DNA from: Eutreptiella sp. 'Long Island Sound 2002'
Taxonomy: Eukaryota > Protista > Euglenida
Length of the DNA stretch: 64,000 nucleotides
Direction of reading: 5' to 3'
Assembly: GCA_964036045.1 (NCBI GenBank)
Contig: OZ038379.1
Location: 76,074,001 to 76,138,000, forward strand
In this document: positions 2 through 54,949 of the stretch, piece after piece
Position numbering within the stretch: position 1 is the first letter of the stretch
Layout of the letters: each line of letters begins with the position of its first letter
Program-made: the position numbers and the translations under genes
Notes under the pieces: generated by a model
Seen by the model: only the letters and a program-made list of their open reading frames with translations
What the model was told of the DNA's origin: nothing
Database searches by the model: none

Positions 2-3000
2 AACAGGGGCTTTGTGCCCCCGCTGCGGGGCATCACCGACCCGGTCGCGCGTGCAGAGAAGGCTGCTGGGCTGGCGCAGGGGTACGACCAGGACTACCGT
101 GACTCGGAGGGGCGGTGCCTGTCTGACGAGGGGTTTATCCCTCCGGTCTACACACAGGAATATGTGGACCCAGATGGGCACTGTCCAGGGGAGCAGGGCT
201 TCATGCCACCGGTTGGGGGCGGTGATCCCATGGACTACGGGGCATACAACGCCCATTACCGTGATCGCGAGGGCCGCAAGCCTGGTGAAGAGGGCTTTGA
301 GCCACCCCTTGCCAGCCGCGGCCAGAGCCCCCGGGAGGGCTACGACGAGTTTTACCGTGATGCCCGGGGGCACAAGGTGGGCAATGCCGGCTTCCTGCCG
401 CCCACCAAGACACAGCCAGTTGTCATGTATGACAAGCAGAAGGGGATCGTGCACATTGTGCCCAAGGCTCCTTCAACCCCGGCCTCCAGCCCCGATGCCC
501 TGGAATCCAGGCCCGTAGAGATACCGTTCACCTTTCCGGTGTACACCGATGCCTACGTGGATGACTATGGCCGCAAGGTGGGAGAGACTGGGTTCATGCC
601 GCCAGGCCACGTTGGGATGCCCCTCCCTGAAGGGGGCTACACCGACCAATACCGGGACCGGGCCGGGCGGAAGCCTGGCGAGCGAGGGTTTGTGCCGCCC
701 AAGGCCTACATCGAGGGGAAGACCCCGGAGCAAATGGCGCTGGAGCTGCCCCAGGGCTTTGATGAGGGCTACTTCGACTCTGAAGGCCGGCAAATGGGAC
801 ACCCTGACTTCCGTGCACCAGCGCCGCGCCCAACCGACGGCCTCTTGGGCCTCGAGGAGAGCGGCTTCCAACCAAACTCCTCCATCTATTACCAGCAGAG
901 CTTCTGCGATGCGTCCGGCCTCATGCCCGGCGATGACGGTTTCATGCCGCCGGGAAAGAAGCGGGCAATGGAGGCGGGCACCTACGATGACCACTACGTG
1001 GACCCCAGTGGCAAAGTTGCGGGGGAGCCAGGGTTCGTGCCACCCGGCAAGACCTTTGGCCTCCTGGAGGGCTATGACGAGTTCTACCGTGACCCGAATG
1101 GCTTTGGCCCCAGCGACCCCAGATTCACCCCACCAAAGGTCAAGATCCCATCCCAAGGGTCGCAGAGGAAGATAGTGCGCCGCCGGTCCACGGCGCCCAC
1201 AATTCGTCGCATCACGGGGCTGCGGTACCATTTGGACTCCGTGAGGCGGCCCATCGGGGTGCTCTTGGACATGTCTGGCAAGCCCATCTACTATACATCC
1301 GCCTGGCCCGCAGTGGTGTGGTCCACCGATGTGGGCGCCCACGTGGCCATCGCAGACACGATGGTAGACGATGTGGCATCTGCCAATCCGGACCTGCTGG
1401 TGGTGGACCGCAGCCCACTCACCAACCTGCACACTGGCCGGCCACTGAGCCTCAAGCGCGCGCGGCGCATTGCGCACTACCTGTGTGACAAGTCTGCGAA
1501 TTTCCACGCCCACTCACTCGACCCAGTCACGGATGTGTACGGGGACACCTGCTTTGACAAGACCGGGCGGCCCATCTTTGTTGTCAAGCCCAAGGAGTGG
1601 GTGAGGGCCCCAGACGGCAGCAAGGTCCTGGATGCGACCGGCCAGCCCATCTCCCAGCACACCGCCCAGCGCTACCTGGGCATTCCCCCGGGAGAGGCCC
1701 ACATGTGGGTGGCGGAGGTGGAGGTCTCCGACAAGGGCCAGGTGCTGTACAACGTTGATGGGAGCCCGCAGCTGCGAGTCGTGAAGTCAAAGAAGACGAA
1801 CATTGTGATCAAGGGGCCCTCTGGCAAGGCCCTACAGAATGTGGACAGCAAGGCCTTCACGCGGGGAGAGCTGCAGACAATGGCGGGGCAAAACAAGGTG
1901 CTGGTGCTCTCCCGCAGACGCCAGGACGCAGTGCCTGCCCGATCAGAGGAGCACCCAATGGCGCTGGTGGTGGATCAGTCGGGCGGGCCAGTGTATGACC
2001 GGTCTGGCTGGCCCATGCTCATCCGGCACGACCCCGATGACCTTCAGGACAGGCTGCGGCTCTTCATCCTCCCGGACAGCACCCGCCCGCACGTCGTGTT
2101 TGGTCCTCAGGAGACCCCCCTCACACACCAGCTGACCGGTCTGCCACTGACGCAGAAGCGCGCGGCCCACACCGCCCGCTTCTCTGCGTCCGTCACTGAC
2201 GAGTATGAGGTGGGTGTGATCAACGGCCCCGACGGGCATCCCCTGCGCGATGTGAATGGCAACCCGGTGTTCCAGCGGACCAGGCGGCGCCCTGGCTACC
2301 TCAAGGGGCCGGAAGGTTCGCGCCTGCTGGACGCCAACGGCAAGACCATCACCGCGAGCCAGGCTGAGCGCATGGCCGGGATCACATGGGAGGACATCAA
2401 CAGCTACACTGTGGAGTTGGTATTGGACGATGATGGGCTTCCTGTGTATAGTGGCGGGAACCCGGTGATCCGCCAGGGGGCCCTCAAGGAGGGCAAGCCT
2501 CACTTCCTGGACGCCAAGGGGCAGATTGTGTGTGACGCCAAGGGCAAGCCCCTGACAGAGGGCCGCGTGCGGCAGATGATGAAGGACAAGGAGCTGGTGC
2601 TGCTGTCCCAAGTCCGATCCAAATACTTTTCCATCGACGACGACCTGTCGGGCGAGGAGTCGACTGAGTCGGACTCCTCCATCGCTTCATCTGGCCGAGA
2701 GGCCCGTGACCCCTATATCGCACACATCACCTCTGACGTGCCCTCCCGCGTGCCGTCACTGTCGCACCCAAAGAGCCCAAGTCCCGGCCTTGACAAGACC
2801 GACTCCGTGCAGTCGCTGACGCGGCAGACCTCCACGCCCTCCCCGCGGGACTCTGTGTCCTCTGCCAGCGTACCTACCCCCACCAAAGACAAGCGGCCCG
2901 GGAAGGGCGACCCCAGTCAGGGCTCGCCCTCCAGCAGTGGGGGTGTGGAGTCACCGGGCCTGGGGCTGGAGGTGGCTTATCTGGGGCTGAGGGTGGTTGA

Positions 3001-6000
3001 GCTTGCGCAGGGCCAGGTCCGTGTGCCAAGTGGCGCGGTCAAGGTGATCAGCGCCGCAGGGCCCGCAGCACGCGCTGGGATCCTGCCGCAGGACCTCATT
3101 GCGCAGATCAACGAGGACCCAGTCCCCACATTGGAGCATTTCCGGGGGGTAACTGCCGAGCTGCGCCCGGGGGTGCCCTGCAACGTGCACATCGAGCGCA
3201 ACCACCGGAAGATGGTCTGCAAGCTGACCCCGGTGGCTGGGGAGCGTCGCCCAAGCGGGAAGAAGGCCCAGCCAGTCGACGAGGGGTCAAGCATGGGGAA
3301 GCGTGGGAGCTCTGGTGGGTCCACGACCCCCCGCAGCACCGGGGGAGGCGGCACCAGCCCCCGCAGCAGTGGGCATTCAGGCGGCGGGACGCCCCGGACT
3401 GCACCATCCGGGGGGAATACCCCACGCTCCTCTGGCCCTGCCTCCTCCGGGGGCGGCACCCCTCGCAGCAAGTCCGACAAAGCCCCAAAGCAGGGGGGCG
3501 GAGCACAGCCTTCTACGCTTGATTTTTCGACCTCTGCCCCGGCTCCGGCACGTCCGCCAGTGCCTCCTGGCCAGTCGCGTGTGACTGGGCTGGAGGTGAC
3601 GGCACGGCTGGCCATCATGCAGGAGGAATGGGAGGAGCGGGTCAAGTGCCTGAAGAAGTTTGTGGATTCAAGCCCGAGCCGTGCCGCAGTCCCTGATGTT
3701 GAAGCAATGCACCAGGAAGCGCCAACGGGGGACCTGTCGGTTCGCTGTTACGGACCACACTACCGGGACGCAAAAGGGCGGAAGCCTGGGGACCCAGGGT
3801 TTGTGCCACCGCTGACAGGGGTTTTGGACGAGGCCGAGCGGCAGCGGAAGGCGGCAGGGCTGCTCGATGGCTATGATGGAGATTATCGCGATGAGAATGG
3901 GCACTGGCCCGGCAGCCCCCTTTTCATGCCCCCCTGTTACAACGACAATTACACAGACGCCAACGGGCGGCATCCCGGCGAAGCGGGCTTCTTACCCCCG
4001 GGATCTTCGCAGCCGCTGAATGAGGGCATGTATGACGCTAACTACCGCGACATCAACTGGCGGCGGCCCGGTGACCGTGGTTTCATCCCGCCAATGGCAG
4101 CCAAGTATGGCATGACGGCAGAGGAGATGGCAGTGCAGCTGCCCATCGGGTACGACGACAAGTATGTGGACCCTGAAGGGCGGGTGTCCCATGAGTCCGG
4201 CTTCATCCCTCCCCACCAGCAGGAGGTGTCCTTTATTCGGGAGGCTGAGTTCTCACTGTTCGTGCGTGTGCTGACGGCAAAGGTTGAGACCAGCGAGGAG
4301 GAGTTGCAACCCTACACTGTGCTGCGTGTGGGCAATGTGCGGCACAGCAGTACCATCAAGAAGTCCCGAGTGCCTGAATGGAACGAGACCTTCCAGTTCG
4401 AGAACCCAGACCTTGATACGCAGACCCTCGACGTTGCACTGTACTCACAGAAGACCCCTGCCGACGTGTCTTTGGGCAAGGCGCGTGTCAACCTTGCGGG
4501 GCTGAAGCAGACCACGACGCAGGCGCTGGACATCCCCTTGATGCTGAAAGGCGATCAGGGGCAGTGGGTTGAGGTGGGCAAGATGCAGGTGCTGCTGGAG
4601 CTGCGCAGCAGTGCTCCCCCGAAGTCCCCACCACAGCCACGCTCCGAGAAGCGGCTGCGGGCGGAGCTGATCAAGGCTACCGGGGTGTCGAAGCGCGCAG
4701 AGGGCTGGTACGTGAAGCTGACGCTCGGGGGGCAGGTCAAGACATCGTCCCCAAAAGAGGGCACGCCACTCCCACAGTGGAATGAGCTCTTTGAGTTCGA
4801 CGTCATTGATGAGGCACGGGAGACCCTCAACATCACGCTGCTCGACGAGTCGGACACGACCCTGGGGTTGTACCGCCTCAAGTTCGACAACATGCCTCGC
4901 GAGGTGCGGCAGGAGGTTGTGGCGACCCTTCTCGTGAAGCGGACCGATGGCCAGTGGGCGCCGAACGACCCCCCAGACAAGCTCGTGCTGGGGTTGACAA
5001 CGGTCCGCTTCGGCCGCCCAGTGCGCGACAAAACCGACAAGGCCCGCACCACGGCAGGGTCCGCGGGACTGCCCGTGGGGTACACTGCCGAGTACCAGGA
5101 CCCCGCAGGCCGCTCCCCTGGCGTGCAGGGGTTCGTGCCGCCCGCCACTGGCTACGCAGAGCATGTCTCAAGCCAGGCGCCGCTGGACGCTGGCTGCTAC
5201 GACGAGGGCTACACGGACGCCCTTGGGCGGCAGCCAGGTGATTCGCACTTCATCCCGCCGTTGCAGGGCATTACGGACCCGGAGGTCCGCGCCGCAAAGG
5301 CCAAAGGGCTGGCGGACGGGTACGACATGGATTATCGGGATGCAAATCGTGCTGGGCCCCTAATGCCCGGGTTCATACCCCCCTGCTACACCATGGAGTA
5401 TGTGGACCCCAATGGGCGCCATGTTGGGTCCCAGGGCTTCATCCCGCCTTTGCACCGCCACGCGAAGGAACTCACACTGCCCCACGGCTGCTACGACGAG
5501 AACTATCGGGACGGCAATGGGCGGCGGCCAGGGGAGGTGGGGTTTGTGCCAGTGTTGCAGCACGGTAAGACCGCGCAGGAGATGGAGGCCAAACTGCCCA
5601 AGGGCTACGACGAGTTCTACCGTGACCCAGACAACAACAAGCCCGGGGCGCCACAGTTTGTGCCTCCCCGGCCATATCCCCCTACGTTCGCAAAGGGGCC
5701 GGTGCCAGGAACGCTGCTGGGCGAACCAGAGGTTGCTGGTGGCGCTGCGGCTGTGACCGGGCCCACTAGCAGTGACAGCCAGGGCCTGCCTCCAGTCGTC
5801 TCTGCCCGCACTGGGACTGAGGTGGTCATTGACCCAATGCGTGCAAAGTCGCCTGTGGAGTGGAAGATCCCTCTGGGGGTACAAGGCTCAGGGGCGCAGC
5901 AGGGGGGCAATGCCCTTGCTGCCCCTGCGCAGACCTCCACAGATGCCTGGGTGCCCACAAAGCCGCCTGGAAAGACTTCATCAATTGCAGCGCTCGGGGA

Positions 6001-9000
6001 CAGCAGTGCACGCCCCACCGCCCCAGGTCCGTCACAGTGCAGCAAGCCTGGAGAGGAGCGACCCAAGCCTGGGTACGTGCCCCCTCTGACCTCCAAAACT
6101 GATCCCACTGCCAAGCCGCCAGACGGCTCTGACTCCGGGAGTGAGGGCAGCGGCGGCGTGGCCTACACAGCCGACTACCGCGATGAGAACGGGAAGGCAA
6201 TCGGCGAGGAGGGCTTCATCTCCCCAGTCAGTGGGCAGCCACTGCCCGCTGGCAGCTACGACTCTGGGTTCCGTGATGAGGATTTCCGGAAACCTGGGGA
6301 CCCCGGGTTCAAGCCTCCAGTGACAGGGCTGATGGACGCGGGCACCTGCGAAAAGAAAACAGCGGGGCTGGAGACGGGGTATGACGAGGGGTATGTGGAC
6401 CTGCAGGGCCGGCAGACTGGGGAACCAGGGTTCGAACCCCCAGGCCCTGGCAAGCCCTCGGTCTCCACAAAGGGCAGCGCGATGGCCAGCCCAGGAGGCC
6501 CAGGTGGCTCGGAGTTCTCCCTGGCGCCCGCCAGCCCGGTCTCCCTGACTGGCGACCACATGGCTGGAGACGCGAGTGCCCTCCCCCCACTCAAAGAACT
6601 GAAGGTGCTGCTGAATCAAGTGACCCGGATCGAGGGTCGAGGGGTATCAGATTCCTCTGCTTGGTATGTCCGCAGCCGCATCGGTGCCAACGAGTATTGC
6701 TCGCAGGTTAAGAACGGCAGTGACCCAATGTTCCATGAGACCTTCGGGCTGCGCGTGTCCGACGAGGTCAGCGAGACACTGGACCTCAGCCTCATCAACG
6801 CGAAGACCGGCGAAGTGCACGGGCAGGCACGCGTTGGCCTTGGGGACCTTCTGGCGACCTCACAACCGTCCGCCGTCACGCTGTTTGTGCAGGACAAGCT
6901 GAGCGGGCAGTGGGTGGAGACTGCCACCGCGACCCACTTGGAGCTGGAGCCCATCGGATTTGGGGCAATGCCGGACGGGCAGCTGGAAAAGCAGTTGACT
7001 GTGGAGGTGATCCAGGCAGCGTGCCCTGGCATCCCTCCAGGCCGCAAGGGCCTGACCCTGACCCTGAAGCTTGGGCAGCATGCACGACACACCACCCCGA
7101 AAATCGCAAGTGCAAAGATCCGCTGGAAGGAGCTGTTCCGGTTCCCTGTGGGGGATGCAACGAAGCAGACGCTAGACCTGACGCTGCGCGATGGCAAGGG
7201 TGAGGTGCTGGGAATGCACCGGCTGAAGATTGACGGGCTGAGGGATGGCGTCCGACAGGAAGTGGGTGCGACGCTGCATGTCAAGAAGCGCGGCAAGTGG
7301 GTAATCCCAGATCTCCCGACGCGCCTCGCCCTCGGCTTGACCGTGCATGGCCTTGACCTGTACAACGACTCGTATGTGGACGCCTTTGGGCGCAGCCCCG
7401 GTGAGATTGGGTTTGTGCCGCCTCTGCAGGGCAAGCATGGCATGACTCCCGAGGATGCTGCACGCGAGATGCCAGGGGGTTACGATGCCAACTACCGAGA
7501 CCGCTGGGGCAGGAAGCCCGGCAGCCGCGGGTTCCAGCCGCCGGCAGGCTGTGGTTCCCCATTGCCGCGCACTGGCAAGCGCCAGGGCACTCCTGTTGAA
7601 AAAGCCATCATCCCAGGTCAAGTGTCGACAACGGGGACATACGGCAGTAACTACAACGATAGCAACGGCCGTCGCCCCGGAGAATTGGGGTTTGTGCCGC
7701 CTCGGGCCGCCGCGGCGGGGATGACGGCATCTGAGATGGGATCCAAGATGCCGGAAGGCTATGACGAGTTCTACCGGGATGAAGCTGGGCGGAAAAAGGG
7801 CGAGCCAGGCTTCCGACCCCCATGTTATACTGATGATTATCGGGATGCAGCTGGAAGGAGACCAGGGGATGATGGATTTATCTCCCCGGTCACCAGTCAA
7901 GCCCTGGCCAAGGGAGCGTATGATTTGGGCTACCGGGACTCTTGCTGGCGGAAACCTGGGGACACTGGATTTACGCCCCCTGGTAGTTCAAGGGGACTTC
8001 CAGAGGGATATGACCAGGATTATGTGGATGAGTTGGGCCGGAAGATGGGCGATGCAAGCTTCACACCGCCAAAATATGATTCGGACTATGCGGATGATGC
8101 AGGCAGGCGGGCTGGAGAGGAAGGGTTTGTACCACCTGGCAAGACAAAAGGATTGGGGGCTGGAGAGTATGATGAAAATTATTGTGACCAGAACCAGAAG
8201 CGCCCAGGAGAGGAGGGGTTCATTCCCCCAATGCAGGGTGCAGCAGGAAGGACAGCGGAGGAGATGCGGCAGCTGCTGCCGAAAGGCTACGATGATGGAT
8301 ACCGTGATGTCAATGGTAAGCGTAAGGGCGATCCAGGGTTCATACCACCACAAGCCAAACTACCGCTGGTGTATGACAGCACGTACACCGACCCCAGTGG
8401 CAAGCAGCCTGGGGAGGTCGGGTTTGCGCCCCCTGTGCACCCACCCACTGACCCCCCCAAAACATTCCCAACGGATGGCGCCTATGATGCGCAGTACCGA
8501 GACGACTCTGGGAAGAAAGCGGGCGACAGTGGATTTGTTCCACCGCTGCACGGCATCACTGACCCAGTCAGACGGGCATCAAAAGAGAGTGGTCTCGCTG
8601 TGGGATGGGATGAGGATTACTATGACCCAAGTGGAAACCATGCAGGCGTTGATGGTTTTGTCGCCCCGAGCTACACTTCGGACTACGTTGATTCTGAGGG
8701 GCGTCGACCAGGTGAACAAGGGTTCCTGCCTCCTGGCAAGACCGCCAGCATGAGGATGTACCATGCTGGTGAGTATGATTCGCGGTACCGTGACCAAAAC
8801 GGCCGACAGCCTGGGGAGCCTGGATTTATCCCTCCGATGCATAAGGATAAGAGTGCAGCAGAGATGATCACAGCTTTGCCGGATGGTTATGATATGAACT
8901 ATGTGGATCCGAATGGACACAAGCCCGGGCAGCCCGGATTCCAACCGCCAAAGCCACCAGGCAAGAAGCCACTGCTGAAGAAACCGGGCAAGTATGATGC

Positions 9001-12000
9001 TTCTTATAGAGATGAGAATGGCCGGAAGCCCGGGGACAGAGGTTTCATCCCCCCACTGGCAGCTGCAGATGGTGATACTGCAGCAGAGATGGAGCAGAAG
9101 CTTCCTCAGGGGTATGACGAAAACTACGTGGACTCTGGTGGGCGGTCGATTGGAGATGAGGGCTTCAGGCCTCCGAGCTACACAGCTGACTATGTGGATG
9201 GCAATGGCCACCGACCTGGAGAAGCAGGATTTATGCCACCCACTGAAACTGGAAAGGCAGCTGGTAAGCAGCTTGGGGCTGGGGAGTATGATGAAGGGTA
9301 CCGGGATGCAAACTTCAAGAGGCCTGGGGAGCCCGGGTTCATTCCGCCGGAGCGTGCGGTGGAAGGTTACACGAAGGAGCAGATGATGGAGATCAATCCA
9401 ACCGGGTATGATGACAAGTACCGAGACAGGGATGGCAACCAGGCGGAGGACGACGGGTTCCTCCCCCCTGTCGAATTCCTGCGGGACTCGTTTGATGGAC
9501 TGGCCCCTGCGTGTGGCGGACATGTAGCACCAGCTGCACCACTGGCCTTTGGCACCTACACTGGCACATATCGTGACGTTAATGGCCGTCGCCCCGGAGA
9601 ATTGGGGTTTGTGCCGCCTCGGGCCGCCGCGGCGGGGATGACGGCATCTGAGTTCGGATCCAAGATGCCGGAAGGCTATGACGAGTTCTACCGGGATGAA
9701 GCTGGGCGGAAAAAGGGCGAGCCAGGCTTCCGACCCCCATGTTATACTGATGATTATCGGGATGCAGCTGGAAGGAGACCAGGGGATGATGGATTTATCT
9801 CCCCGGTCACCAGTCAAGCCCTGGCCAAGGGAGCGTATGATTTGGGCTACCGGGACTCTTGCTGGCGGAAACCTGGGGACACTGGATTTACGCCCCCTGG
9901 TAGTTCAAGGGGACTTCCAGAGGGATATGACCAGGATTATGTGGATGAGTTGGGCCGGAAGATGGGCGATGCAAGCTTCACACCGCCAAAATATGATTCG
10001 GACTATGCGGATGATGCAGGCAGGCGGGCTGGAGAGGAAGGGTTTGTACCACCTGGCAAGACAAAAGGATTGGGGGCTGGAGAGTATGATGAAAATTATT
10101 GTGACCAGAACCAGAAGCGCCCAGGAGAGGAGGGGTTCATTCCCCCAATGCAGGGTGCAGCAGGAAGGACAGCGGAGGAGATGCGGCAGCTGCTGCCGAA
10201 AGGCTACGATGATGGATACCGTGATGTCAATGGTAAGCGTAAGGGCGATCCAGGGTTCATACCACCACAAGCCAAACTACCGCTGGTGTATGACAGCACG
10301 TACACCGACCCCAGTGGCAAGCAGCCTGGGGAGGTCGGGTTTGCGCCCCCTGTGCACCCACCCACTGACCCCCCCAAAACATTCCCAACGGATGGCGCCT
10401 ATGATGCGCAGTACCGAGACGACTCTGGGAAGAAAGCGGGCGACAGTGGATTTGTTCCACCGCTGCACGGCATCACTGACCCAGTCAGACGGGCATCAAA
10501 AGAGAGTGGTCTCGCTGTGGGATGGGATGAGGATTACTATGATTCCCAAGGCAGGCGTTTTAGAGACGAGGGATTCATTCCTCCAACCTACACTTCGGAC
10601 TACGTTGATTCTGAGGGGCGTCGACCAGGTGAACAAGGGTTCCTGCCTCCTGGCAAGACCGCCAGCATGAGGATGTACCATGCTGGTGAGTATGATTCGC
10701 GGTACCGTGACCAAAACGGCCGACAGCCTGGGGAGCCTGGATTTATCCCTCCGATGCATAAGGATAAGAGTGCAGCAGAGATGATCACAGCTTTGCCGGA
10801 TGGTTATGATATGAACTATGTGGATCCGAATGGACACAAGCCCGGGCAGCCCGGATTCCAACCGCCAAAGCCACCAGGCAAGAAGCCACTGCTGAAGAAA
10901 CCGGGCAAGTATGATGCTTCTTATAGAGATGAGAATGGCCGGAAGCCCGGGGACAGAGGTTTCATCCCCCCACTGGCAGCTGCAGATGGTGATACTGCAG
11001 CAGAGATGGAGCAGAAGCTTCCTCAGGGGTATGACGAAAACTACGTGGACTCTGGTGGGCGGTCGATTGGAGATGAGGGCTTCAGGCCTCCGAGCTACAC
11101 AGCTGACTATGTGGATGGCAATGGCCACCGACCTGGAGAAGCAGGATTTATGCCACCCACTGAAACTGGAAAGGCAGCTGGTAAGCAGCTTGGGGCTGGG
11201 GAGTATGATGAAGGGTACCGGGATGCAAACTTCAAGAGGCCTGGGGAGCCCGGGTTCATTCCGCCGGAGCGTGCGGTGGAAGGTTACACGAAGGAGCAGA
11301 TGATGGAGATCAATCCAACCGGGTATGATGACAAGTACCGAGACAGGGATGGCAACCAGCCTATAGAAGCTGGCTTTGTACCCCCCTCACCACCGCAGCG
11401 AGGAAGCCAACCACTCCAACCAATCCAATCACCCCACGAACTGCAATCCCCACCCACTGACCCACAACAGAAAGTGGGTGACCCCTATCCACAACCCCTG
11501 CGTGTCCTGCAACACCAGGAACCGCGTGTAAGCAACCCCCTTGCGCCCTTGGAATATTCTTCCGCTTACCGCGATCAGAACAACAGACAGCCTGGGGAGC
11601 CAGGATTCATTCCACCACAGTATGCCAACACAGGCAAGAGTGCAGCAGAGATGGCACTGGCTTTCCCTGGGGGTTATGACAGGAACTATGTCGACTCCAA
11701 TGGTCTCAAAGCAGGCCAGCCAGGCTTTGTCACCCCTAGGGCACCACTGCCCTCGCCACAAAAGCCAGGGTTGTACAACAAACACGGCCAGAAAACGGGT
11801 GATGAAGGCCACACGGTTCCAGAGTTGGCTGCAGCTGGGGCAGCTTTGCCTGCTGCAGAAAAGGACAGTGAACAACCACCTGACGAACAGCTGCACCCAC
11901 CTGGGCACAGGCTGGCGCATCCTGGGCCCATTGGGCTGGGTTCTCTCACCCTCGAAAGCAATGAGCCTTATCCAGATCCAGTCGGCCCAGTTTCTGGCCC

Positions 12001-43740: not shown

Positions 43741-44929
43741 TTGGCGTGCCGCAGGTGCTGCAGGCCTCGCAGGAAAAGCGCTCTCATTATCCCGCCCCTC
43801 GTCGGTGCCATCCATAGGCGTCTTGCAGGAGGAGGCGCCAAGCCAGGGGCACAGGATTACGCGACCCCCGAGATGCTGCGGCATCTATGGCAGCGGGGAG
43901 ACACAGAGGAGGACCGCGCATTCGTGGCCATTATTTTCCTGTTGTGGATCTGCTTCTGGCGCGTCAGGGAAGTGGCGTTAGTCCGCCCCTTCGATCTTCT
44001 CGAAGCGGGGGATGGATCCTTCTATCGCACGAAGTCCGGCAGGCCCAAAGGCTGCCACAGACGGCCTCTCTTCAAGTTTGGCATGTCCTGGGCTGGCTAC
44101 CTGTCCGAGCGGACGACGGAACCTCCCCCTCGACGAGCCTATCTTCCAGGGAGGAGGGGCAGTGTTCAAAGACCGGCTCGGGTCTCTCCTCCGGGGGGCC
44201 CGATGGAGCGGTTATGCATGGCACAGCCTCAAGAGAGGGGGTGCCGCCTGTTGGAGCCTGAAACCTGGGCTGCCCTACTTCAAATGGTGGGGAGGTTGGG
44301 CTTCTATTGGGGTTGCCATGCGCTACGCGACAGCTTTCCTTCATCATGGAGTGCTGGCGCCATTGGCCTTACCATGGCCTGGATCAGAAGTTGGAGAGCC
44401 TCAAGTGGTCAACTGCTTATCTGTGTGGGGTTCTGCTATGTTTGGGGCAGACGCAGTGGATGAAGCCTTGGGTTATGTGGGGGCCGTCTTTGGTCTTGCT
44501 CGCCCACATCTTGGCGCCGTGGCTGTTAAGCCTCCTGCGACGGTGGTGGGGGGCACCGACGGCGGCGCTCCTGGCCATGAATCGGACAGTCCTTCTACAG
44601 GCTCCGAGGGGTCCAGCTCCTGTGAATCAATCGACTTGGATGGCAGGATCATCGAGCAGCCGGTCAGGGCGGGAGCTCCCGCAGGCCCAGCCTTCAGGGT
44701 CGAAATCGAGGGGCAGTCCGCGGGGCGGAACTGGGGTGGGGGGGGCGGGACGGCAAAAGCGCAAACGGCAAGCCCCCCCCGTCCACCCTCTAAGCGCCGC
44801 AAAGCAGACGTCGAGTTAGGGCTCTGGGTGTCTCCGGTGATCGTGAAGGGGGGGGAAGGCTGGCGCGTCGGTGGGAGTGGAGAGTCTCTGCTTGAGGGTC
44901 CCCCCCACACCCCAGCGCTGTGTTCTTAG
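43741..44929 (+). pseudogene. Tyrosine recombinase of element A (frameshift ~44125)
   Basis: FWRVRE (catalytic R), RTKSG (K), WHSLKRGGAA (H-x-x-R), WWGGW, AMRYA (catalytic Y). Confidence 0.85.
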
Positions 44930-45199
44930 GCCCCGCCCCGCGCAAGCTGCGTTGGGTCTGGGACCACCGCCTAAACGATGTGCCACTGGAGATGAGAGGC
45001 CGGGCCAGAATCCCGTCCCGCAGGCCACCGGCCTTTCGGCTAAGTTCCAGGGGCGCCCGAGGCAGTGTTGATTTCCTTCTATCCCATCAATTATGTTTGT
45101 TTTCATCTCCACTACGGAGTCCAAGCACCCCCCTGTCCCCTTCCCCTTCTCCGGTGCCGTCCTCCCGGCCCCCACCTGAGCCCCCCCCGTACCTCGTCA

Positions 45200-47267
45200 T
45201 CACTACCCGAGGCAAAGAGTGAGGCCACGCCCTTATTTGTGCAGTTCATGGAGGTACTGGCACCCCATTTACCGTGGATTGCCCGGAAGCTGCCCTGCCC
45301 TTTGGAACTCTTTTTTAAGAGATCTCATATGTTTTTAGAAAGGAGTTTTAGCACCGCGGAGGATTTCAGGTTTGGGGAGGCTTTGCCCATCCTTTTGCAG
45401 AGTTTTGCTGAATTGCAGGAGGATGCGTGGGAGGGGCTTGTGCACTTGGCCACGTCCCCTATACCCCAGATGGCCCGCTCTGATCCGGGCTTGGCGGCGA
45501 AGGGCCTGGGTAAGATGGGTTCCTACGTTATTCCCCAACGGCTTTGGCAACAGCTCGTCCCTGAGTCCTTTTTGGGGGATGCACTGAGTTATGATGTCGA
45601 GGCTGACCCAGAGGGCAGTTGCGGTACGGTGGGGGCGGGGGTGGCGGAGATGGCGTCCACGTTGCTGAATTCTGGAGTCCTTAGCGCAACCCCGTTGCCC
45701 CCGCCCTGCTTTCCGTTCATCATACCCGAAAGTAGTGAGAAGGTCAGCTTAATCTTGTCCTACTTGGGCATGAACGAGCGGATAGAAGACCCGCTTACTT
45801 TTCAGTTGCCCTCATGTGAGGGTATCGCGCAGCTGCTTGCATCCACGCCATGGTCCTGCCCCCTTTACTGCACCCATGTGGATCTCACCAGCGCGTTTTG
45901 GAGCTTCCGCCTCCCCCCTGCAATGCGCACTGCTTTCCGGTTTCGGGCCCGGCCCGGCGGCCAGGTTTTTGCCCTGGATAGGCTACCTGTTGGGTGGAAG
46001 TTTCCCCCATTTTTTGCCAGCGCATTTTGGGGGATCTAGTGCGACCTCTGATACCCCCCCCCACATGGAATCGTTGCATTATCTAGGCGATTTCTTGTTG
46101 GTGGGGGGCGATCTTGAGGAGGTACCGCGCCACCATCAAGCCTCTCATGCTCGCCCTTGTCAAGGAAAAGTTCGGGGCCTATCTGTGGATGTCCCTGGCC
46201 CAACTCACAGACGCCATTCGGTCGCACCTACAGGCTGTCACCCCAGATGACGAGATGCGTTCTGCTCCCAGATGGCAGAACATATGGCGTCGGAGCCGGC
46301 GTCGCAGGATTTCCGCGACTCCGTGGAAGCCGACCCAGGCCGTTACTGATCGGGTGGTGGCTCCCCCACAGGGGGTGTCTTTTGTGATTAGCCGGAAATC
46401 CATGCTGCAACCGGTCCGGAAAATATTCTTTTTGGGTAAATGGTTGGACCTGCAGGGTAGGGAGATCAGGTCGCACCCCCGGGCTTTTCTGCAGATGTTT
46501 CATGCGTGGGTCGGGCTTGCATGTACGTCCCCACTTTCTAGCAGGCTGCTGCCCAAGATCCCAGGTTTTTTGCAGTGGCATGTTCGTCCCCATGTAGGTT
46601 CAGGGCCGCACCCGGCGGGAGCTTACTGCCATGGTCGGTGGGGCACATCGGGACTACCGACCCCGGTGAAGGTTTTGCACTCTTTGGTCACAGTTATGGT
46701 GCGGTGTGCGGAACCATGGAGACCCCCTGCCCATAGTGAGTTCCAGGTGGCCAGAAATCTGTTTGTGTCAGGTGTAACCCTCCTGGAGTTTTTTGGCCCG
46801 TCCATCTTTGTCGATGCAACTTTGGACAACTTTGGCTTTAGGGTGGGAGGGGTGATACCGGGTCGGGGGGTTAGATCCTGGCTTGTGCAGGACTGTATCA
46901 CCAATCAGCAAGTGGCAGAGCTCCAGCAGATTGCATGGGCGGTGCGCCTGGCTGCCGTCTTGGATGGCGCGCCGTGACCGTCTTTACAGACAGTACGGCC
47001 GCTAGTTGTCAAGCGGTCGGCCTTAGGGCTAAAACGTGGCTCAAGCGCCAGATGAGGGTGCTGCGTGCTGCGTGGCGGTTGGCGGTTCTGGGTATGATCG
47101 TCACATTTGTTTGGGTCCCATCAGCCCTTCAACCGGCGGATCTGCCCAGTCGCTTGTTCTCTGACCACAACGGTAGTATAAGTGCGGCGGAGGGCGCATG
47201 GTGCATTTACGAACGGCTAGTAGGTGTCCCCATGGCTTGCACTATCTTTGGAGTGGTGTTTGTCTGA
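45200..47267 (+). pseudogene. RT/RNase H of element A (frameshifted, YLGD active site, 211-bp insertion)
   Basis: THVDLTSAFWSF, RLPVGWK, HYLGDFL, FFLGK, IRSHPRAFLQMF, IFVDAT, QQVAEL, VFTDS, QPADLPSR all align with element B. Confidence 0.85.
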
Positions 47268-48894
47268 AGTGTGCCCCACCCAGCCGCTCTCGAGACCTAC
47301 CATTCCAAGGTGGTCCACCAGACAGCCCGGGGGCGTCCGGGGTGTCAGCACTGCCACACGAGCTTCGTACAAATCCCTGTCCCACACCCGATTCCTTGCC
47401 CTTCCCTTATGCCCTGAAAAAGCCTGCCGCGAGCCAGACCAGCACCAGCGTCCCCTACACCCAGAGAAAGGGGAGGGCCCCCTCCCTTTGGTGGGTCGAC
47501 AGGGAAAGATAAACTGCCCCCCCCCCGCCCCCACTCCACGAGGACCCGCCAGCAATGGCGGCAGTGGTGGTGCTGTTCTGGGGCTTTGACGTTGGGGTCT
47601 CCAAATTTCGTGACGGTCTGTTCTGGGGCGGACCGGAGGCGGACGGCCAAGTCGGCGGCCGCCGCATGGAGGAGGGCCGGTGCCTCCTGCTCTGGGCACG
47701 GGTGCGCGAAAATCAACTGAGCATGGTGAGCCTGGTGGCCAAGGATCACCCGGCGTACAGGACGCCCCGCCAGTCGGCGGGACCGGACGTCGCGCAAATG
47801 TTGTAGCGCGTGTGCCCTTCCGCGTGTCATCGCTTAGGCTAAGCGGCGGTACGGCCACCACGGCGCCCTCACGCGCGCTTACGACCGCACATGGAAAATA
47901 GGGCTATTTGCATATGGGGGTACCATTCAGCCCTGGGGCCCACGATGCCGGGCGCACGGTTACGTATGCACGGTTCTGTTCGTGCAGTACCTAACCAAAG
48001 ACCGTGCTTTGTGCTTGAGAGCCTGACTGCAGGTCTGTGTTTTCTCTTTCATATGCCCCTGCTAGTGCCCGGGTGTCTCTCTTCGGTGTTTCCTGCCTCC
48101 TCCGCCTGCGTGGTGTCCCCCTGTGGCCTACTGAGACCACACGCGAACTCCGGTGGGCCGCTCGTGACATGGTTTCATGCTGTGGGTGAACAACCCTAGC
48201 AGCGTGGGCGCAGAGGCTAGTGCCGTGGCCGTTGGCTGTGGCTGCCGGTTCCGGAGGAGGCGCTTCTGTCCCTTCCGTTTTCCGGCGGTTGATGACCGGT
48301 TGATGACCGGTTGATGGCGCGCGCTGTCCTTATGTCGTGCTTGTCCGCGATGGCCCCCTCCCCTCCCAATCGGACATTACTTTACCGCCTACGCCTCACG
48401 TGACTCGGTGTGGGACGCCCCATCCATACTCCGCGGGTGCGCCGGGGCGGAACTGTACAAATACTAAATCCTCTCCCCCCCCCCCCCTCCCCCTCCCCCT
48501 CCCTGATTGACCCGGCCGGACAGCGCCCTCTCCTGGATGGGGGGGGGGGGGTTCGGGCTGGTTTGGGGAGGGAACATGGGAGGATAGAAAGGTAAACCGG
48601 AGCGGTGTGTCTGCCCAACGACTTGATGCTTGTGTGCCTTGGTAAACTCTAGTTTGTCCCCCAAACTGGGATTACCATTTCTGCCCTCCCCCCCCCCTAG
48701 GGGCCTGCGGCCAACAGTTAGTTGCCAAAGGTGTTGCCCTCAGGCGTCCATGGGCGCCTAAGGCGCCCAATGCTCCATGAACACCAAAGGTGCCCTAAGG
48801 AAAATTTGTCCAATTTGCACCCCAACACTATCCCTCAACCCAACCTTGACTTTAACACCCGGGCCCCAACCCTCAGCCTACTCCTATCCCTACA

Positions 48895-51288
48895 CCTAAT
48901 CAAGACTGAATATTGGGACCGAGCTGGTGGGGGAGGGAACATTAGCTATGACTGGTGAGGGACATCATGAAAGACTCACACATTGATGGCTCTTGACAAA
49001 GTGAAATCAGCTTGCACGTGCACCCCATCACCACGAGACCCACTCTCAAGGCTTTTTGGACTTGTGAGGGGCCAAAATGCCCCAAAATGGGCTCATTCTA
49101 CCCGTTTGTGCACCCCAAATGGCCTAGGATGAGGTTTGGAAAAATGCGATTTTGACCCATTTTTGGTCCCAAAACAGCCCATTTTCAAGGCATCTTGGGA
49201 TTTTCGGAGGACCAAAATGGGCCACCACAACCTCAAAACGGTCCAAAAACACTTGTTTTAGCGTCGCACATGGTCTAGGATCATTTTTGGAGAAAAGTCA
49301 TCTTTTTGCCCCTACGGGACCCTGTTGACCCATTTGGGCACCCACCTGTTTGGGCTTGAGCTTGCAGCTTGTTGCAGCCTAGTGGGCCTAGGTATTGGGG
49401 TGTAGGCGTCCGTTTGGGCAATTCTGAGGGGTGGAAACCACAAAAAGTGGGGGTTTGCGGGTGGAGTAGGTGCCCTCGGAATCGCATTTGGAGCCAATGT
49501 AGCCAAAAATATGGCCTATTCTTGGTTTGTGGCCATCAGCATTTGGAGCTTCTGGGGCCCTTTTTGGGCCGTTTTCGGGACATATCATGGAGTTAGAGGG
49601 CCGCAAAGAGCTCGTTGACACGGGGAAGTCAAGCCGCAAGTGGAGTGTACCCATTGTTCCCCTTCGTTTGGCCGTTTTGAATGTGTTCCAGGGCCGTTTT
49701 GGCCCAAAAATGGCTGCTTTTGGCCCTAAACTGCAGCTTTTGAAACTGAGGTCTGCCACTTGCGAATCCTGTTCCCGGCCGCCACCGTTGAGTTTCTTGC
49801 TCAAACTTTGTGTGATTGTACTTCACACCCATAGGTATCATCCACCAAAATTTCACCTGAATCTGAAGCACCACGACGGAGTTTTGATTTCCCCCCATTT
49901 CGCGCGTGCTGCTGCTTGCTGCTTGCTTGCTGCTGCTAAACCTGGTACCTTGGTGGGCGGGCGGGCAACAAGAAATTTTTCAAAGGCCCGTGGAAGACAG
50001 TGGGGGGGGCACGGGGGGGGGGGGGGGGATGGGGGCGACCCCTTGGTTCCGGACGCCGACTACCCCCCCAACTAACTGTTGGCCGGAGGCCCCTGGGGGG
50101 GGGGGGGATGGGGGCGACCCCTTGGTTCCGGACGCCGACTACCCCCCCAACTAACTGTTGGCCGGAGGCCCCTGGGGGGGGGGGGGGATGGGAATGGTCT
50201 TGGTTTTATAACCCTTTTTAGGGTCTAGGGTGGACCTACCAGGTTTAGCAGCAGCAAGCAAGCAGTAAGCAGCAGCACGCGCGAAATGGGGGGAAATCAA
50301 AACTCCGTCGTGGTGCTTCAGATTCAGGTGAAATTTTGGTGGATGATACCTATGGGTGTGAAGTACAATCACACAAAGTTTGAGCAAGAAACTCAACGGT
50401 GGCGGCCGGGAACAGGATTCGCAAGTGGCAGACCTCAGTTTCAAAAGCTGCAGTTTAGGGCCAAAAACAGCCATTTTTGGGCCAAAACAGCCCTGGAACA
50501 CATTCAAAACGGCCAAACGAAGGGGAACAATGGGTACACTCCACTTGCGGCTTGACTTCCCCGTGTCAACGAGCTCTTTGCGGCCCTCTAACTCCATGAT
50601 ATGTCCCGAAAACGGCCCAAAAAGGGCCCCAGAAGCTCCAAATGCTGATGGCCACAAACCAAGAATAGGCCATATTTTTGGCTACATGGCTCCAAATGCG
50701 ATTCCGAGGGCACCTACTCCACCCGCAAACCCCCACTTTTTGTGGTTTCCACCCCTCAGAATTGCCCAAACGGACGCCTACACCCCAATACCTAGGCCCA
50801 CTAGGCTGCAACAAGCTGCAAGCTCAAGCCCAAACAGGTGGGTGCCCAAATGGGTCAACAGGGTCCCGTAGGGGCAAAAAGATGACTTTTCTCCAAAAAT
50901 GATCCTAGACCATGTGCGACGCTAAAACAAGTGTTTTTGGACCGTTTTGAGGTTGTGGTGGCCCATTTTGGTCCTCCGAAAATCCCAAGATGCCTTGAAA
51001 ATGGGCTGTTTTGGGACCAAAAATGGGTCAAAATCGCATTTTTCCAAACCTCATCCTAGGCCATTTGGGGTGCACAAACGGGTAGAATGAGCCCATTTTG
51101 GGGCATTTTGGCCCCTCACAAGTCCAAAAAGCCTTGAGAGTGGGTCTCGTGGTGATGGGGTGCACGTGCAAGCTGATTTCACTTTGTCAAGAGCCATCAA
51201 TGTGTGAGTCTTTCATGATGTCCCTCACCAGTCATAGCTAATGTTCCCTCCCCCACCAGCTCGGTCCCAATATTCAGTCTTGATTAGG
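48895..51288. repeat. Large inverted repeat: arms 48895-49947 and 50237-51288 (~1,053 bp), spacer 289 bp
   Basis: The arms are reverse complements with only ~4 differences seen by eye; the spacer holds two tandem ~80-bp units. Confidence 0.95.
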
Positions 51289-52775
51289 GTCACCGAGCTG
51301 GTGGAACCAGTCTTGGTTTTATAACCCTTTTTAGTGTCTAGGGTGGACCGGAGTCCGTCAGTGTGCAGATGAAACACTTTTGTCCCGCTCGTTAGGTTTG
51401 GTTTATTTACGTGATCATGATCTAGTATGTTTTGTTCATTGCCGACGTGTATGTCAATGCTTAGAGTTTGGAGTCAGGGAAGCCCCAGAGGTTGCCCAAG
51501 TGGAATTGGTGTGATGCAACGTTTTTTGTTGCAGAGTGTGTAGGTCTCTCTGAGTAGTAGTGTCATGCGATTCTATAGCCCGCGTGGGCTTTACTCTGGA
51601 CTGCAGAAGCACCACCATTTTTGGTTTCACGGCCCGGAGCGGTCTGTCTGCCCAACGGATTGATGCTTGTGTGCTTTGGTAAACTACAAATGCAATTTTT
51701 TTTCACTGCGAGCAACTCCAAAATAGTAGTTTCCGCAAAATTTGTTGTGGCCACTCACAATGATCGTCCGAGCCATGCAAATCATGTTTCAGGGAGTATT
51801 TATGTGTTTTTCTCCCTATCTTGGTATTGAGTGTGTTGGCGGGGTTGGACTGGTACACAAGGTGCTGATGCAGCTGAGCTATCCACCCTGCGCACGTCAA
51901 AAAGTCCTAGTTTCGAAAACCTAGATTTTTGATATGCTTGCTACTCAGAATGATGCCCCAAGCTATGTAAAGCATGTTTTAGGCAGCACTTATGTATTTT
52001 TCACCCTTTCTATTGGGCGTGGCAAGGGGGGGATTTCCCAATCGACTGATACAACCTATGAATGATATACAACCTACCATGCTATGCATGATGGAGTGAT
52101 GGTGTCAAAAGATCAAAGTGCTTTTTTTTGGGTTATCATGTTTGTTTTCTCTGCAATAAACCGACCATTCGCCTCGAAACGGCTTCCTTTAATGGAAAAC
52201 TCCGTTGTATGTGTAAGGAAAAAATTTGTGTAACCTCCCCTCCCTCTCTTGGGGCGCTGGCCCAACACCCCTAGCACTGAGGCCAGTTCCTCCCATCGCT
52301 GCAATAGTGATTGATTGTCGTTTTCATCTGGTCAAGGAATACCTATCACAGACACACCCCTACAACCCCAGTCCCCCTTAAACTCCTCCCCAATCAAGCC
52401 TGATCGAGTCCTGCTCACTCGGCCAAGTAGTGCCAGCAACAGCAAGGTGGGTTTGACCTGGTGGGACCCCTTGGGCGCCTGCTCTGTGATGTAGCATTGA
52501 AACACCTCGGTGTTGCCGTACTGAAGCCAAAAGGTGGAAATCAATGGCTTGGCCCAACACATGAGTGTATCATAGTTGCCTCGTTTGAACTGCCGGACAT
52601 TGCTGCATATGCATAGGAGGACGTGCATGTGTGGAGCGCTTTGTGACCTGCTTGCGGCCCTCTCTTGGGGGTTGATCGCAAAAATAATGCTGTATGTTTT
52701 TGCCCCACCCTTGAGATACTCTTTGTGGGAGGAGTGTGACAGGTGAAATCTTAATTGCGTGATTGTTTGTCCCAG

Positions 52776-53291
52776 GCCAAGACCGTCAGCCCGCAGAAGG
52801 AGTTTGGCGATGATGAGCCAGCAGTGTTGGACGGCCCTTACAATCTGGCAGTGAAGATGGTGTCAGCTACAGTGTACGAGGGCGCACTGTCGGAGAGGGG
52901 CATCTGTGCAATCCTGTCCCTTGGCGACTACATCCACGAGATTGGGCCGCAGCGGGACAAGGTCCGTTGGGAGGCTGAGGTGCTGCTGCCTGTGATAGAT
53001 GTCCAGCGCGACATCCTGGACCTCTCAGTGGTGCAGCCTGCCCTGCCAGGAGAGCTGGGCAAGGCACGCATCAGTTTGGAGGGCCTGCAGCTCAATGAGC
53101 CCCAGCCTTTGCGGTTCCCCATAATGTCCAAGGAGGAGGGCAATTGGAAACCAATGGGGGAAGTTGAGCTGCAGCTGCAGCTAAACTTGGCCCTGCAGCT
53201 GCAGGGCGGCGACAAGCGACCAGGCAAAGTGAAGTCAAAGGAGGCCTCTGAGAAGGATGAGATGGAGGTGAGCCAGGAGAAGCTCCTGCAG
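52776..53291 (+). CDS. Exon D of giant protein (516 bp; C2-like domain)
   Basis: cccag|gcc aag; C2 motifs DILDLSVV, ELGKARISLEGL, W.PMGEVELQL; donor ctg cag|gtcctt gives EKLLQ|VSLLHG, matching the first strand of sibling C2 domains. Confidence 0.85.
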
Positions 53292-54597
53292 GTCCTTGTC
53301 CCCAGCCTTCCCCTCCTCTTTTTCTTTCTGTACTTTGTGTGGAGTCGTTCAAGGACAACCGACAGGTGGTTGGACGGTGGTGGACCTGGAATGATGGCTG
53401 TTAGAGGCCAACGGGGGAGATACAGTGCAAGGTGCGCGGTCTTTTGGGTATTGCGGCTGACTCTTTTCCCATAAATCCCCCTTGTGCTTTTTCTCAGCAC
53501 CTCACCAGCCCCGAAGGCAAATGATGGGCATAGCGCGTTCGGGGCATGTCTTGACGCAGTTGCATGCATGGGGTGTGTGCCGTGACAAGCACTGGTAATA
53601 TTGGGGAAATTGGACATTCCGTTCCGAACCGGATTTTGGACATTCCCTTCCGGACCGGATCCAGAAATTGCATTGGATGGTGCATGCTGTGGTGCACATG
53701 CAACAATTTCTGAATGTCAGGAACGTCCGTTATGAGCCGTACGGTCCGTGGGACCAATTTCCCAGCGCCATCTTTGGCCACCCAAAGGCCACACAACGGA
53801 GCACTGACTCAGATTCATCATCTTCCAACTCGGATTTGTCATCCTCTTCAGGTTCATCCCTTACAAGCACTGAGGAGAATGAGGAGTAGACAAATGAATT
53901 GATGCGAATACTTTGGTGGAATGGGGCGATCCATGAGGTAGTGAAGCGAAACGCGAAACAAACGAAACAGCTATCCTATGGGATTGGGCACTGCATTCGG
54001 TGGTGAATCAAAACGTGAAACGGTCAAAACAGAGTACCTTGCAGGTTTGGGCACCCCGTGAGGTACCTGGCAAGCATTGCAAAGTGGCTGCATGCTTGCC
54101 CCGCTCTTTGATGTTGGGCCGTGCTAAATCCTTCTCCTTTCATCATCAACCAACAGCCCCCTCCAACAGGGGTTGTGGGCGGCTACAACTGCCATGCAAT
54201 TGGTGAGGAGGATGCGGTGGAGGCCTCCGTTGTTGTATGCCTGCCCCTTAGGCCATCGCCTCCCTAAAAAATCACTGAAATTTTTTTGAGACTGCATGCG
54301 AAAGAACGCGCATGGTGGGATGTGCGGTGCGCGTATCTCCCCCAACAGCTGGTGGTGGGACAGTGGTGGGGTCCCAAATGGTTGATGGTCGGAGGCTGCC
54401 AAAAATCACAATCCACGCAGGGGTTGTGCGGCATAGGCTGATAACCCACATTGGTCTGTTGTGACATTTGATCCGAGAATCTGTGTGCTGATCTCAGCAC
54501 TGGTAGTGGGGATGAAAAATGAGGTGATGTGGATGCGCATCTGCATTCACGCTGTCGCTACTGTTTTTACCTCAATTCCTTCCCTTCATCTTTTCAG
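53292..54597 (+). other. Intron 4 (GT-AG, phase 0, 1,306 bp)
   Basis: Pyrimidine tract at 54560-54594 before ttcag|gtc; in-frame join. Confidence 0.85.
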
Positions 54598-54949
54598 GTC
54601 AGCCTCCTGCATGGTATCGACTTCTATGATGCTGCTGGGGAGCTGCTCAATGGGGCTCAAGTGAAGCTGCACTTTGGAGGACAGATGTACCACAGCAGCC
54701 TGAAGGATGGCACTGCCAATCCTGAGTGGAGTGAGGAGTTTGTGTTTCCTGTTGAGAATGAGGTGGAGCAAACCCTGGATATTGCTGTCATGGATCGGCA
54801 GGCCATTATGGGCATGTGTCGTGTGAAGATCGAGTCGCTGCCACGGGATGTCAAGCACCCCATGGACATCAAGCTGTTCACGCTCATCGATGGCAAGTGG
54901 GTCACACTTGACCCCCCGCAACGGCTGCAGCTTGTGTTTGTGGCCAAAG
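54598..54949 (+). CDS. Exon E of giant protein (C2-like domain); 3' boundary uncertain (54947/54949 if spliced, 54987 if terminal)
   Basis: PEWSEEFVFPV, EQTLDIAV, MGMCRVKIESL, GKWVTLDPPQRLQLVFVAKG match the second-type C2 repeat; no GT donor at the expected point. Confidence 0.8.

Follow-up and report, generated by a model that had tools for sequence, protein, structure and literature searches.

A very large spliced Eutreptiella gene alternates C2 domain pairs with a repeat domain found in euglenids

The 64,000-nucleotide stretch of Eutreptiella sp. 'Long Island Sound 2002' analyzed here (assembly GCA_964036045.1, contig OZ038379.1, positions 76,074,001 to 76,138,000; hereafter the window) contains two giant plus-strand open reading frames (ORFs), 14..14128 (4,704 amino acids, aa) and 20129..30115 (3,328 aa). 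They raise the question of whether neighboring genes or parts of a single gene are present, and of what kind of protein is encoded. Coding stretches have a G+C content of 57-66%, against near 50% in the spacers. A sequence-only reading of the window had proposed a giant protein encoded by five exons, in which clusters of a 21-residue repeat alternate with mostly paired C2-like domains, together with one PDZ domain and long disordered linkers. We conclude, with little reservation, that the five exons in the window belong to one very large, spliced, expressed euglenid gene. The repeat is organized into a larger unit that we read as a real folded domain, previously undescribed, on the evidence of structural models. 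A cortical role for the protein is proposed tentatively.

Results

Five exons join into one reading frame

All elements of the gene lie on the plus strand. When joined, segments 2-14050, 20234-30067, 39444-39689, 52776-53291, and 54598-54949 give 8,332 codons with no stop, as had been proposed from the sequence. Each of introns 1 to 4 has a GT donor and an acceptor consisting of a pyrimidine-rich tract and AG. Exon 1 (1..14050 in the window, which holds 4,683 of its 4,930 codons) starts 739 nt 5' of the window at the acceptor ...cccacag/GAC (a slash marks the exon boundary), opens in the middle of a repeat unit, and ends at the donor GATCAG/gttatc. It encodes repeat arrays, an unassigned region of two copies of ~240 aa each, three C2 pairs, and the PDZ domain. 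A fourth C2A domain begins in exon 1 and is cut after its first half by intron 1 (14051..20233, 6.2 kb, GT-AG). Exon 2 (20234..30067, 3,278 codons) lies within the ORF 20129..30115 and encodes the remainder of this pair and further repeats, ~1,300 aa of disordered linker, one unpaired C2 domain, two near-identical modules of repeats and a C2 pair, and a module of repeats and a C2B domain. Beyond intron 2 (30068..39443, 9.4 kb), exon 3 (39444..39689, 82 codons) supplies the GFG tail of C2B and two repeat units. Intron 3 (39690..52775, 13.1 kb) separates it from exon 4 (52776..53291, 172 codons), which encodes a linker and a C2A domain. Intron 4 (53292..54597, 1,306 nt, GT-AG) is followed by exon 5 (54598..54949, 352 nt or 117 1/3 codons), which encodes a C2B domain and ends at a GC donor. 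Among ORFs from the ENA, P0001 is 100% identical to exon 1 across 4,708 aa, and P0003 is 99.97% identical to exon 2. Missed repeat or C2 exons were sought in the window introns and in the 9 kb past exon 5, and none was found.

The joins restore domains that the introns split. The C2 domain at intron 1 (protein residues 4620-4744), once joined, aligns over its full length with fifteen paralogs. Junction 2 (TSQ/GFG) rebuilds the ...TSQGFGK tail that follows C2B in the paralogs and in Entosiphon relatives, and the exon 4/5 join brings the C2A of exon 4 up to a C2B that starts at the beginning of exon 5. Exons 3, 4, and 5 together form a short but complete module of repeats, C2A, and C2B. The three C2 domains that the earlier proposal had seen restored at the joins are thus borne out.

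RNA evidence for splicing

Contigs from three metatranscriptome runs (X1, X2, and X3) match exons 4 and 5 without mismatch and skip exactly positions 53292-54597 (1306 nt, GT..AG); intron 4 is spliced out in RNA. Two long RNA contigs (3,336 and 3,503 nt) share a start 1,525 nt 5' of where exon 4 begins. The spliced exon 2-3-4 model gives the same distance: its stretch of unique 31-mers that includes exon 4 reaches back exactly 1,525 nt, to a point within the duplicated module at the end of exon 2. An assembler working at k=31 must break at that repeat; between their start and exon 4 the contigs therefore contain the final 1,279 nt of exon 2, then exon 3, and nothing more.

The same contigs diverge from the genome at 54951 and extend 941 and 1,108 nt more. 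Because they run on past this point, position 54949 is a splice donor rather than the end of the protein, as had been supposed; the stop codon at 54985-54987 is not where exon 5 ends. The paralogs carry GFG after C2B and the contigs have a 2-nt 'GC' overhang, so the next exon was predicted to start GC-TTC-GG. Such a start was sought in the remainder of the window and not found there; it was located 28.4 kb downstream, at ...ccttctctag/GCTTCGGAAAG, in frame with the first half of C2B. Intron 5 (~28.4 kb overall; its first 9 kb, 54950..64000, show no exon-like similarity) is therefore GC-AG, with the donor AAAG/gcagcc, whereas all other junctions examined, supported or inferred, are GT-AG, and most exons end in CAG. 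In all, RNA contigs connect the end of exon 2 via exons 3, 4, and 5 into exons 6 and 7.

These data bear on the alternative that the giant ORFs are separate genes, or alternative transcripts lying side by side, whose in-frame joins are fortuitous. We regard this as highly improbable. At each junction, joining in phase makes whole a C2 domain or repeat unit that is otherwise split. Both giant ORFs open within a repeat or domain with no plausible start, and RNA contigs lead from the end of exon 2 through to exons 6 and 7. What such an arrangement has in its favor is that euglenids trans-splice a leader onto their mRNAs, which in principle would let an AG acceptor serve for trans-splicing, and that two junctions have no reads.

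Several points weigh against the single-gene model. The junction between exon 1 and the repeat exon found upstream of it (see below) and the exon 1/exon 2 junction are defined by splice signals and restored repeats or domains, with no reads. The RNA comes from runs labeled estuary metatranscriptomes, at low depth (about 6-11x word depth), and the coordinates of the flanks, taken from another assembly, may be off by indels between the two assemblies. Spliced RNA across the four window junctions had been named with the sequence-only reading as the check on its model: intron 4 is seen directly, the exon 2-3-4 join is matched by the contig ends, and exon 1/2 is without reads. The last 441 aa of exon 2, used as the query in a word-indexed protein search for transcript-derived proteins across junctions 2-4, gave no match. 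The same kind of search with the upstream exon returned two euglenid relatives only and missed the locus's own ORF, so the word index is incomplete for this genome. JGI metagenome contigs, scanned for the exact sequence of the exon 4/5 junction, gave 0 matches.

The gene extends beyond the window

The flanks were read from ENA ERZ25074135, another assembly of the locus that is 99.9% identical. On the same strand, ~23.7 kb above exon 1, lies an exon of 1,679 codons composed solely of the 21-residue repeats. Its end (...GFIPPTYTQ/gtatgc) and the start of exon 1 (DYVDAKGRR...) together form one perfect repeat unit. Downstream of intron 5 are exons 6 (104 2/3 codons), 7 (381 codons), and 8 (138 codons). 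Exons 7 and 8 finish the split C2B and add six repeat units, a C2A domain, and the start, in exon 8, of a more canonical C2 domain with RDPYV. The supported chain from the upstream repeat exon to exon 8 comprises 10,882 codons (~1.2 MDa) with both ends open; the proposal of one spliced giant gene stands, and its size had been understated.

Four more upstream exon-like stretches lie on the same strand, each with a divergent C2-like domain (i-E 7e-7 to 2e-2 with a custom C2 hidden Markov model, HMM). The first and third also have sub-threshold Pfam matches to C2 or NT-C2, and the first opens with a V/P/E/K/I-rich segment of ~33 residues that is reminiscent of the repeats of articulins or alveolins. 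The 5' end was sought in the 10 kb above this articulin-like exon, which resembles transposon ORFs only. At the 3' end, the continuation of the last partial C2 domain was sought in the 5.4 kb after exon 8 and was not found.

A five-unit repeat domain

The 21-residue unit has the consensus YDxxYRDxNGRxPGExGFxPP, and 91 copies were found with a custom HMM in the part of the protein encoded by the window. The sequence-only reading had recognized the unit; what it had not seen is that the units are arranged in a fixed order of five, forming a domain of ~165 residues with two linkers, G[IV]xDPxxRAxKAAGL and GxTAxEMxxxLPxG. In alignment A1, 29 copies of the five-unit domain align in register with 39-55% identity to a reference copy, which is encoded at 3749..4213 (+) and adjoins C2 pair 1 on its upstream side. 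The sources of the alignment are the window, the flanking exons, Eutreptiella, Entosiphon, and Chasmostoma, plus the matches P0006 (ENA) and P0008 (Logan). The five-unit register is kept in four euglenid genera: Euglena, Eutreptiella, Entosiphon, and Chasmostoma. The protein is modular and of a cytoplasmic type, and its recurring module is the five-unit domain with a flexibly joined C2A-C2B pair behind it. Arrays of the domain alone occur too, and one long uninterrupted array of ~43 units, taken from the HMM architecture, is encoded at 7361..11737 (+).

AlphaFold, run on those 29 sequences only, modeled the five-unit domain with a mean pLDDT of 92.8 and a pTM of 0.82, and all five models agree. 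The model contains three short helices and otherwise isolated beta-bridges. The repeat domain and the C2 pair were modeled separately, the combined module alignment having put C2 fragments onto repeats.

Relatives of the five-unit domain were sought by structure and by sequence. Foldseek against the PDB returned 0 matches at E<=10. Comparison with AFDB clusters reached a TM of <=0.16 and with the ESM Atlas <=0.32; there was no match among Swiss-Prot models, and a wide VIA-align search found nothing at Z>=2. An ESM Atlas feature search with the repeat array gave meaningless matches only (<=0.64), and a Pfam search with the five-unit domain found no family at E<=1. Models that contain little regular secondary structure are poorly served by fold-search tools, so that 'no neighbor' is weak evidence for a new fold, and this has to be set against our reading of the domain as new. 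The models point to a well-ordered, mostly non-helical, non-sheet fold without a detectable structural or sequence relative outside Euglenida.

YD/RHS repeats, found in teneurins and in Rhs and Tc toxins, were considered as a known family to which the unit might belong, and were rejected. They have a similar period of ~21 residues and a Y...D..GR core. The register differs, being Y-x-D-x-x-G-R here and Y-D-x-x-G-R in YD repeats. The full five-unit domain has no RHS_repeat match in Pfam at E<=1, and its model is without the long beta-hairpins of YD shells.

C2 domains without calcium ligands

Pfam C2 (PF00168) is matched in exons 1, 2, and 5 with 132.9, 179.7, and 37.9 bits against a cutoff of 22. 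We mapped 16 C2 domains in the window part with phmmer and a custom HMM, most of them in C2A-C2B pairs. On the phmmer map the pairs are encoded at 4214..5011 (pair 1), 6608-7351, 12278-13057, 13859-14050 plus 20234-20812 (split by intron 1), 26522-27283, 28103-28852, and 52809-53192 plus 54622-54945 (across exons 4 and 5). Single C2 domains are encoded at 25367-25711 and, across intron 2, at 29714-30067 plus 39444-39449, all on the plus strand. The Pfam and HMM maps agree with the architecture proposed from the sequence, with its alternation of repeat clusters and mostly paired C2 domains, its single PDZ domain, and its long disordered linkers.

The AlphaFold model of the C2 pair shows two all-beta sandwiches joined by a flexible link (pLDDT 87, pTM 0.52). 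Its nearest structures by Foldseek are the E-Syt2 C2A-C2B fragment (E 6e-16), otoferlin, myoferlin, dysferlin, and synaptotagmins, and the sequence profile of the pair matches the E-Syt and ferlin families too. Single C2 structures (Itch, Munc13-1 C2B, and a Trichomonas C2) superpose on the model with a TM of 0.74-0.79 by target.

None of the 16 window C2 domains keeps the five calcium-binding Asp residues, and each has at most one Asp at the five positions; three canonical relatives keep four to five. With these residues lost, the window C2 domains most likely bind membrane or protein constitutively, to judge from their sequences. Calcium-dependent C2 domains of the synaptotagmin/PKC type, defined by five acidic ligands in loops 1 and 3, were accordingly rejected as a class for these domains (0 of 16).

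The likeness to E-Syts, ferlins, and multiple C2 domain and transmembrane region proteins (MCTPs) lies in many C2 beta-sandwich domains, often in tandem. Unlike those proteins, the one described here is 5-10 times larger, lacks the calcium Asp residues in its 16 C2 domains, and alternates C2 pairs with an unrelated new domain. A ferlin was rejected on the lack of FerA, FerI, FerB, DysF, or a transmembrane element in the 8,332 window residues (Pfam). An extended synaptotagmin or tricalbin was likewise rejected, no SMP domain being found by Pfam in the window residues or in the upstream exons scanned. An articulin or epiplastin does not fit either: there is no VPV-rich medial domain in the window translation, and the only comparable stretch is the ~33-aa V/P/E/K/I segment of the upstream exon. 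In this respect the sequence-only reading, which took the protein for neither an articulin nor a ferlin, was right for the window part.

PDZ domain, linkers, and internal duplications

The PDZ domain is encoded at 2978..3211 (+; exon-1 residues 993-1070) and is HtrA/DegQ-like: it scores 32.1 bits with PDZ_2 (PF13180) against a cutoff of 27, and matches DegQ and DegS PDZ chains with E values of 2e-6 to 5e-6. Upstream of it, at 1199..2641 (+), the translation reads as two divergent copies of ~240 aa rich in D-x-x-G-x-P-[IVL]. The only match of this two-copy region is a sub-threshold one to Lipoprotein_15 ('Secreted repeat of unknown function'; 20.4 bits against 24.4, Pfam), and an ESM Atlas feature search with the exon-1 region 400-900 gave meaningless matches (<=0.64).

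The low-complexity S/G/E-rich linker of exon 2 (21455..25354, +, ~1,300 aa) contains seven RRxS motifs, where shuffled sequences give an expectation of 0.72. Five of the seven stand in the recurring context RR[TGM]S...S[YF]SQ[AG]S. These contexts may be phosphorylation sites for basophilic kinases.

Exon 1 contains, within its array of ~43 units, a recent tandem duplication of 1,917 bp (7655-9459 vs 9572-11376, 45 mismatches in 1,805 nt). Most of the mismatches fall in ~45 nt at 8626-8670, where one repeat unit has been swapped for a different version. In exon 2, 25984-26547 recurs 1,581 nt further on with ~96% identity over the measured stretch, giving the two near-identical modules of repeats and a C2 pair; this duplication is where the RNA contigs break. 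The gene is still growing by internal duplication. Such duplications, 96-100% identical and 1,917 and 1,581 bp long, would also be expected of a runaway repeat ORF of recent expansion with little or no function, its size the product of tandem duplication, and the low RNA depth would suit the low transcription of such an ORF. We give this explanation very little weight. Although transposable elements abound in the region, frames of 14.8 kb and 9.8 kb have stayed open, splicing is accurate, and older modules have diverged yet are intact. The domain register and key residues are, moreover, conserved to deep-branching phagotrophic euglenids.

Relatives of the repeat module

One module served as the query for an exhaustive HMMER search of 1.84 billion representative proteins; of its 257 matches, the best 150 were inspected. 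A search of this kind with the repeat and C2 module was another of the checks suggested for the sequence-only reading. Among these best 150, every repeat-matching relative with a named source is a euglenid: Entosiphon sulcatum, Ploeotia vitrea, Chasmostoma nieuportense, Eutreptiella braarudii, and E. gymnastica. No kinetoplastid source was present among the named matches in the best 150 of the 257. C2-only matches are generic multi-C2 proteins from many eukaryotes. The distribution suggests that the repeat domain is probably restricted to euglenids.

In two relatives, from Entosiphon (2,557 aa, an ORF called complete) and Eutreptiella (2,355 aa), repeat blocks stand beside coiled coils of more than 1,000 residues, and no Pfam domains were found in either protein. 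The fusion of repeat blocks to long coiled coils suggests that the domain is a mobile module of large, cytoskeleton-like euglenid proteins. The repeat is also carried off this locus by P0006 and P0014 (ENA, a contig of 1.94 Mb) and by P0005, P0008, and P0019 (Logan), in some cases directly beside C2 domains, from which it follows that the module of repeats and C2 exists in paralogs or in other species. The ENA ORF P0002 (3,133 aa, 54 repeat units) is identical to P0165 (UniRef A0A7S4FTV3, E. gymnastica) across the aligned repeat blocks, and is probably the single-exon genomic version of that protein.

Other features of the introns and flank

Intron 2 carries a retroelement RNase H remnant at 36034-36699. 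A tyrosine-recombinase retrotransposon occupies 57.9-63.7 kb in intron 5, with RVT_1 at 60495-62501 and a weak integrase-SAM match at 58968-59771. Intron 3 contains high-copy repeats at 51000-51440 and 52470-52760 (word depth up to ~1e6 in a DNA-like run, also present in RNA runs). In other copies of this repeat, the loose ends at 51284-51292 read TTAGGG-like telomeric repeats (…TAGGGTTAGGGTTA…). Introns 1 and 3 each contain three consecutive plus-strand ORFs of 250-350 aa (16281-19520 and 44012-46977) that match no Pfam family and do not resemble the giant protein; they are probably unclassified mobile elements. Short tandem repeats of ~2 copies each occur in introns at 35403-35553 (period 76 nt) and at 50015-50192 (79 nt, starting with a G14 run).

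Just past exon 8 on the same strand, frame-shifted fragments of POR_N (pyruvate:NADP+ oxidoreductase, PNO) were found at L007 16245-17950, a location that in the ENA assembly is ~16-18 kb past the end of the window. They are probably a retro-pseudogene.

Discussion

What might a protein of this size do in a euglenid? Euglenids are the lineage defined by a strip pellicle, for which the list of molecular components is a short one, made up of articulins, IP39, and tubulin. All lineages with the repeat domain share this strip system as their defining structure, and for this reason we favor, tentatively and at rather less than even confidence, a function as a cortical (pellicle) linker between membrane and cytoskeleton. 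The sequence-only reading had inferred a membrane-skeleton, pellicle, or flagellar-attachment scaffold. Indirect points that fit such a role are the repeat found only in euglenids among matches of known source, the coiled-coil fusions, the C2 domains without calcium ligands, and the articulin-like stretch upstream. In this model, the protein would be held along the cytoplasmic side of the plasma membrane, or on a protein layer under it such as the epiplasm, by its many C2 pairs, each attached weakly and constitutively. For the repeat domains we envisage a cytoskeletal partner peculiar to euglenids, which would be microtubules or a component of the pellicle strips. A membrane protein would be gripped by its C-terminal tail in the PDZ domain, and kinases would act on the RRxS linker as a regulatory hinge.

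Three considerations count against a pellicle assignment. The argument for it comes from taxonomic restriction and domain logic. The remaining repeat-bearing matches are unlabeled Logan, ENA, or JGI fragments. Neither protein terminus was reached, so that the protein could have an N-terminal signal peptide or a C-terminal membrane anchor.

The main rival to the cortical linker keeps the same gene model and makes the protein a scaffold for a specialized membrane site, secretory or at the flagellar pocket, in place of the general pellicle. The site might be where mucocysts dock and undergo exocytosis in the grooves of the pellicle, the reservoir or flagellar pocket, or what remains of the feeding apparatus. 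The protein would act there in the manner of RIM and Piccolo, which tether vesicles and channels. We consider this rival doubtful. RIM and Piccolo (Aczonin), an animal-only family, combine PDZ, C2A, and C2B with long disordered regions and, in Piccolo, giant size. The order of a PDZ domain and then tandem C2 domains, the long disordered linkers, and the giant size found here resemble them, and the closest structures to the C2 pair come from membrane-tethering and fusion proteins (E-Syt2, otoferlin, myoferlin, and synaptotagmins). That likeness is one of architecture, a common domain set rather than demonstrated homology: the PDZ domain is HtrA-like, and Pfam finds no zinc finger or other RIM/Piccolo region, and no Munc13-type or SNARE-related domain, in the window residues. 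The calcium ligands of an exocytic sensor are missing from all 16 window C2 domains, and the number of modules suggests a long structural element and not a point scaffold. Mucocysts do dock at pellicle grooves (PMC6212826), which counts for the specialized-site scaffold.

A cortical linker would have candidate partners in the same group of organisms, in the articulins and epiplastins of the Euglena membrane skeleton; the survey of epiplastins does not mention C2 domains (PMC6212826). Our full-text literature searches found no paper linking Euglena with C2 proteins of this kind, in the pellicle or otherwise. WCB, a trypanosome protein, has a single C2 domain and is far smaller than the giant protein described here. 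As a corset protein of Trypanosoma brucei with a C2 domain (Baines & Gull 2008, Protist 159:115, as cited in PMC4152294), it is the nearest functional analogy for a C2 domain associated with the cortical cytoskeleton. A multi-C2 scaffold is a known kind of protein; what is new is chiefly the repeat domain, together with the size and the structure of the gene.

More speculatively, and on balance improbably as a whole, the five-unit domain could be a new fold that arose in the euglenid ancestor as an adaptor between plasma membrane, epiplasm, and microtubules. The protein of more than 1.2 MDa would then be a ruler or periodic connector of the pellicle strips, with dozens of C2 pairs and repeat domains spacing the bridges seen by electron microscopy, and RRxS phosphorylation would help control euglenoid shape change.

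For annotation there is a practical warning, since automated annotation divided the gene into unrelated ORF calls. With at least 10,882 codons and single exons of 14.8 kb and 9.8 kb, the product would rank among the largest predicted protist proteins. The 165-residue domain, conserved, confidently modeled, and found in one lineage, is a good target for structural and binding-partner work. For the biology of euglenids, the gene provides a concrete candidate in the question of what links pellicle strips with the membrane and with microtubules, and of how the strips slide.

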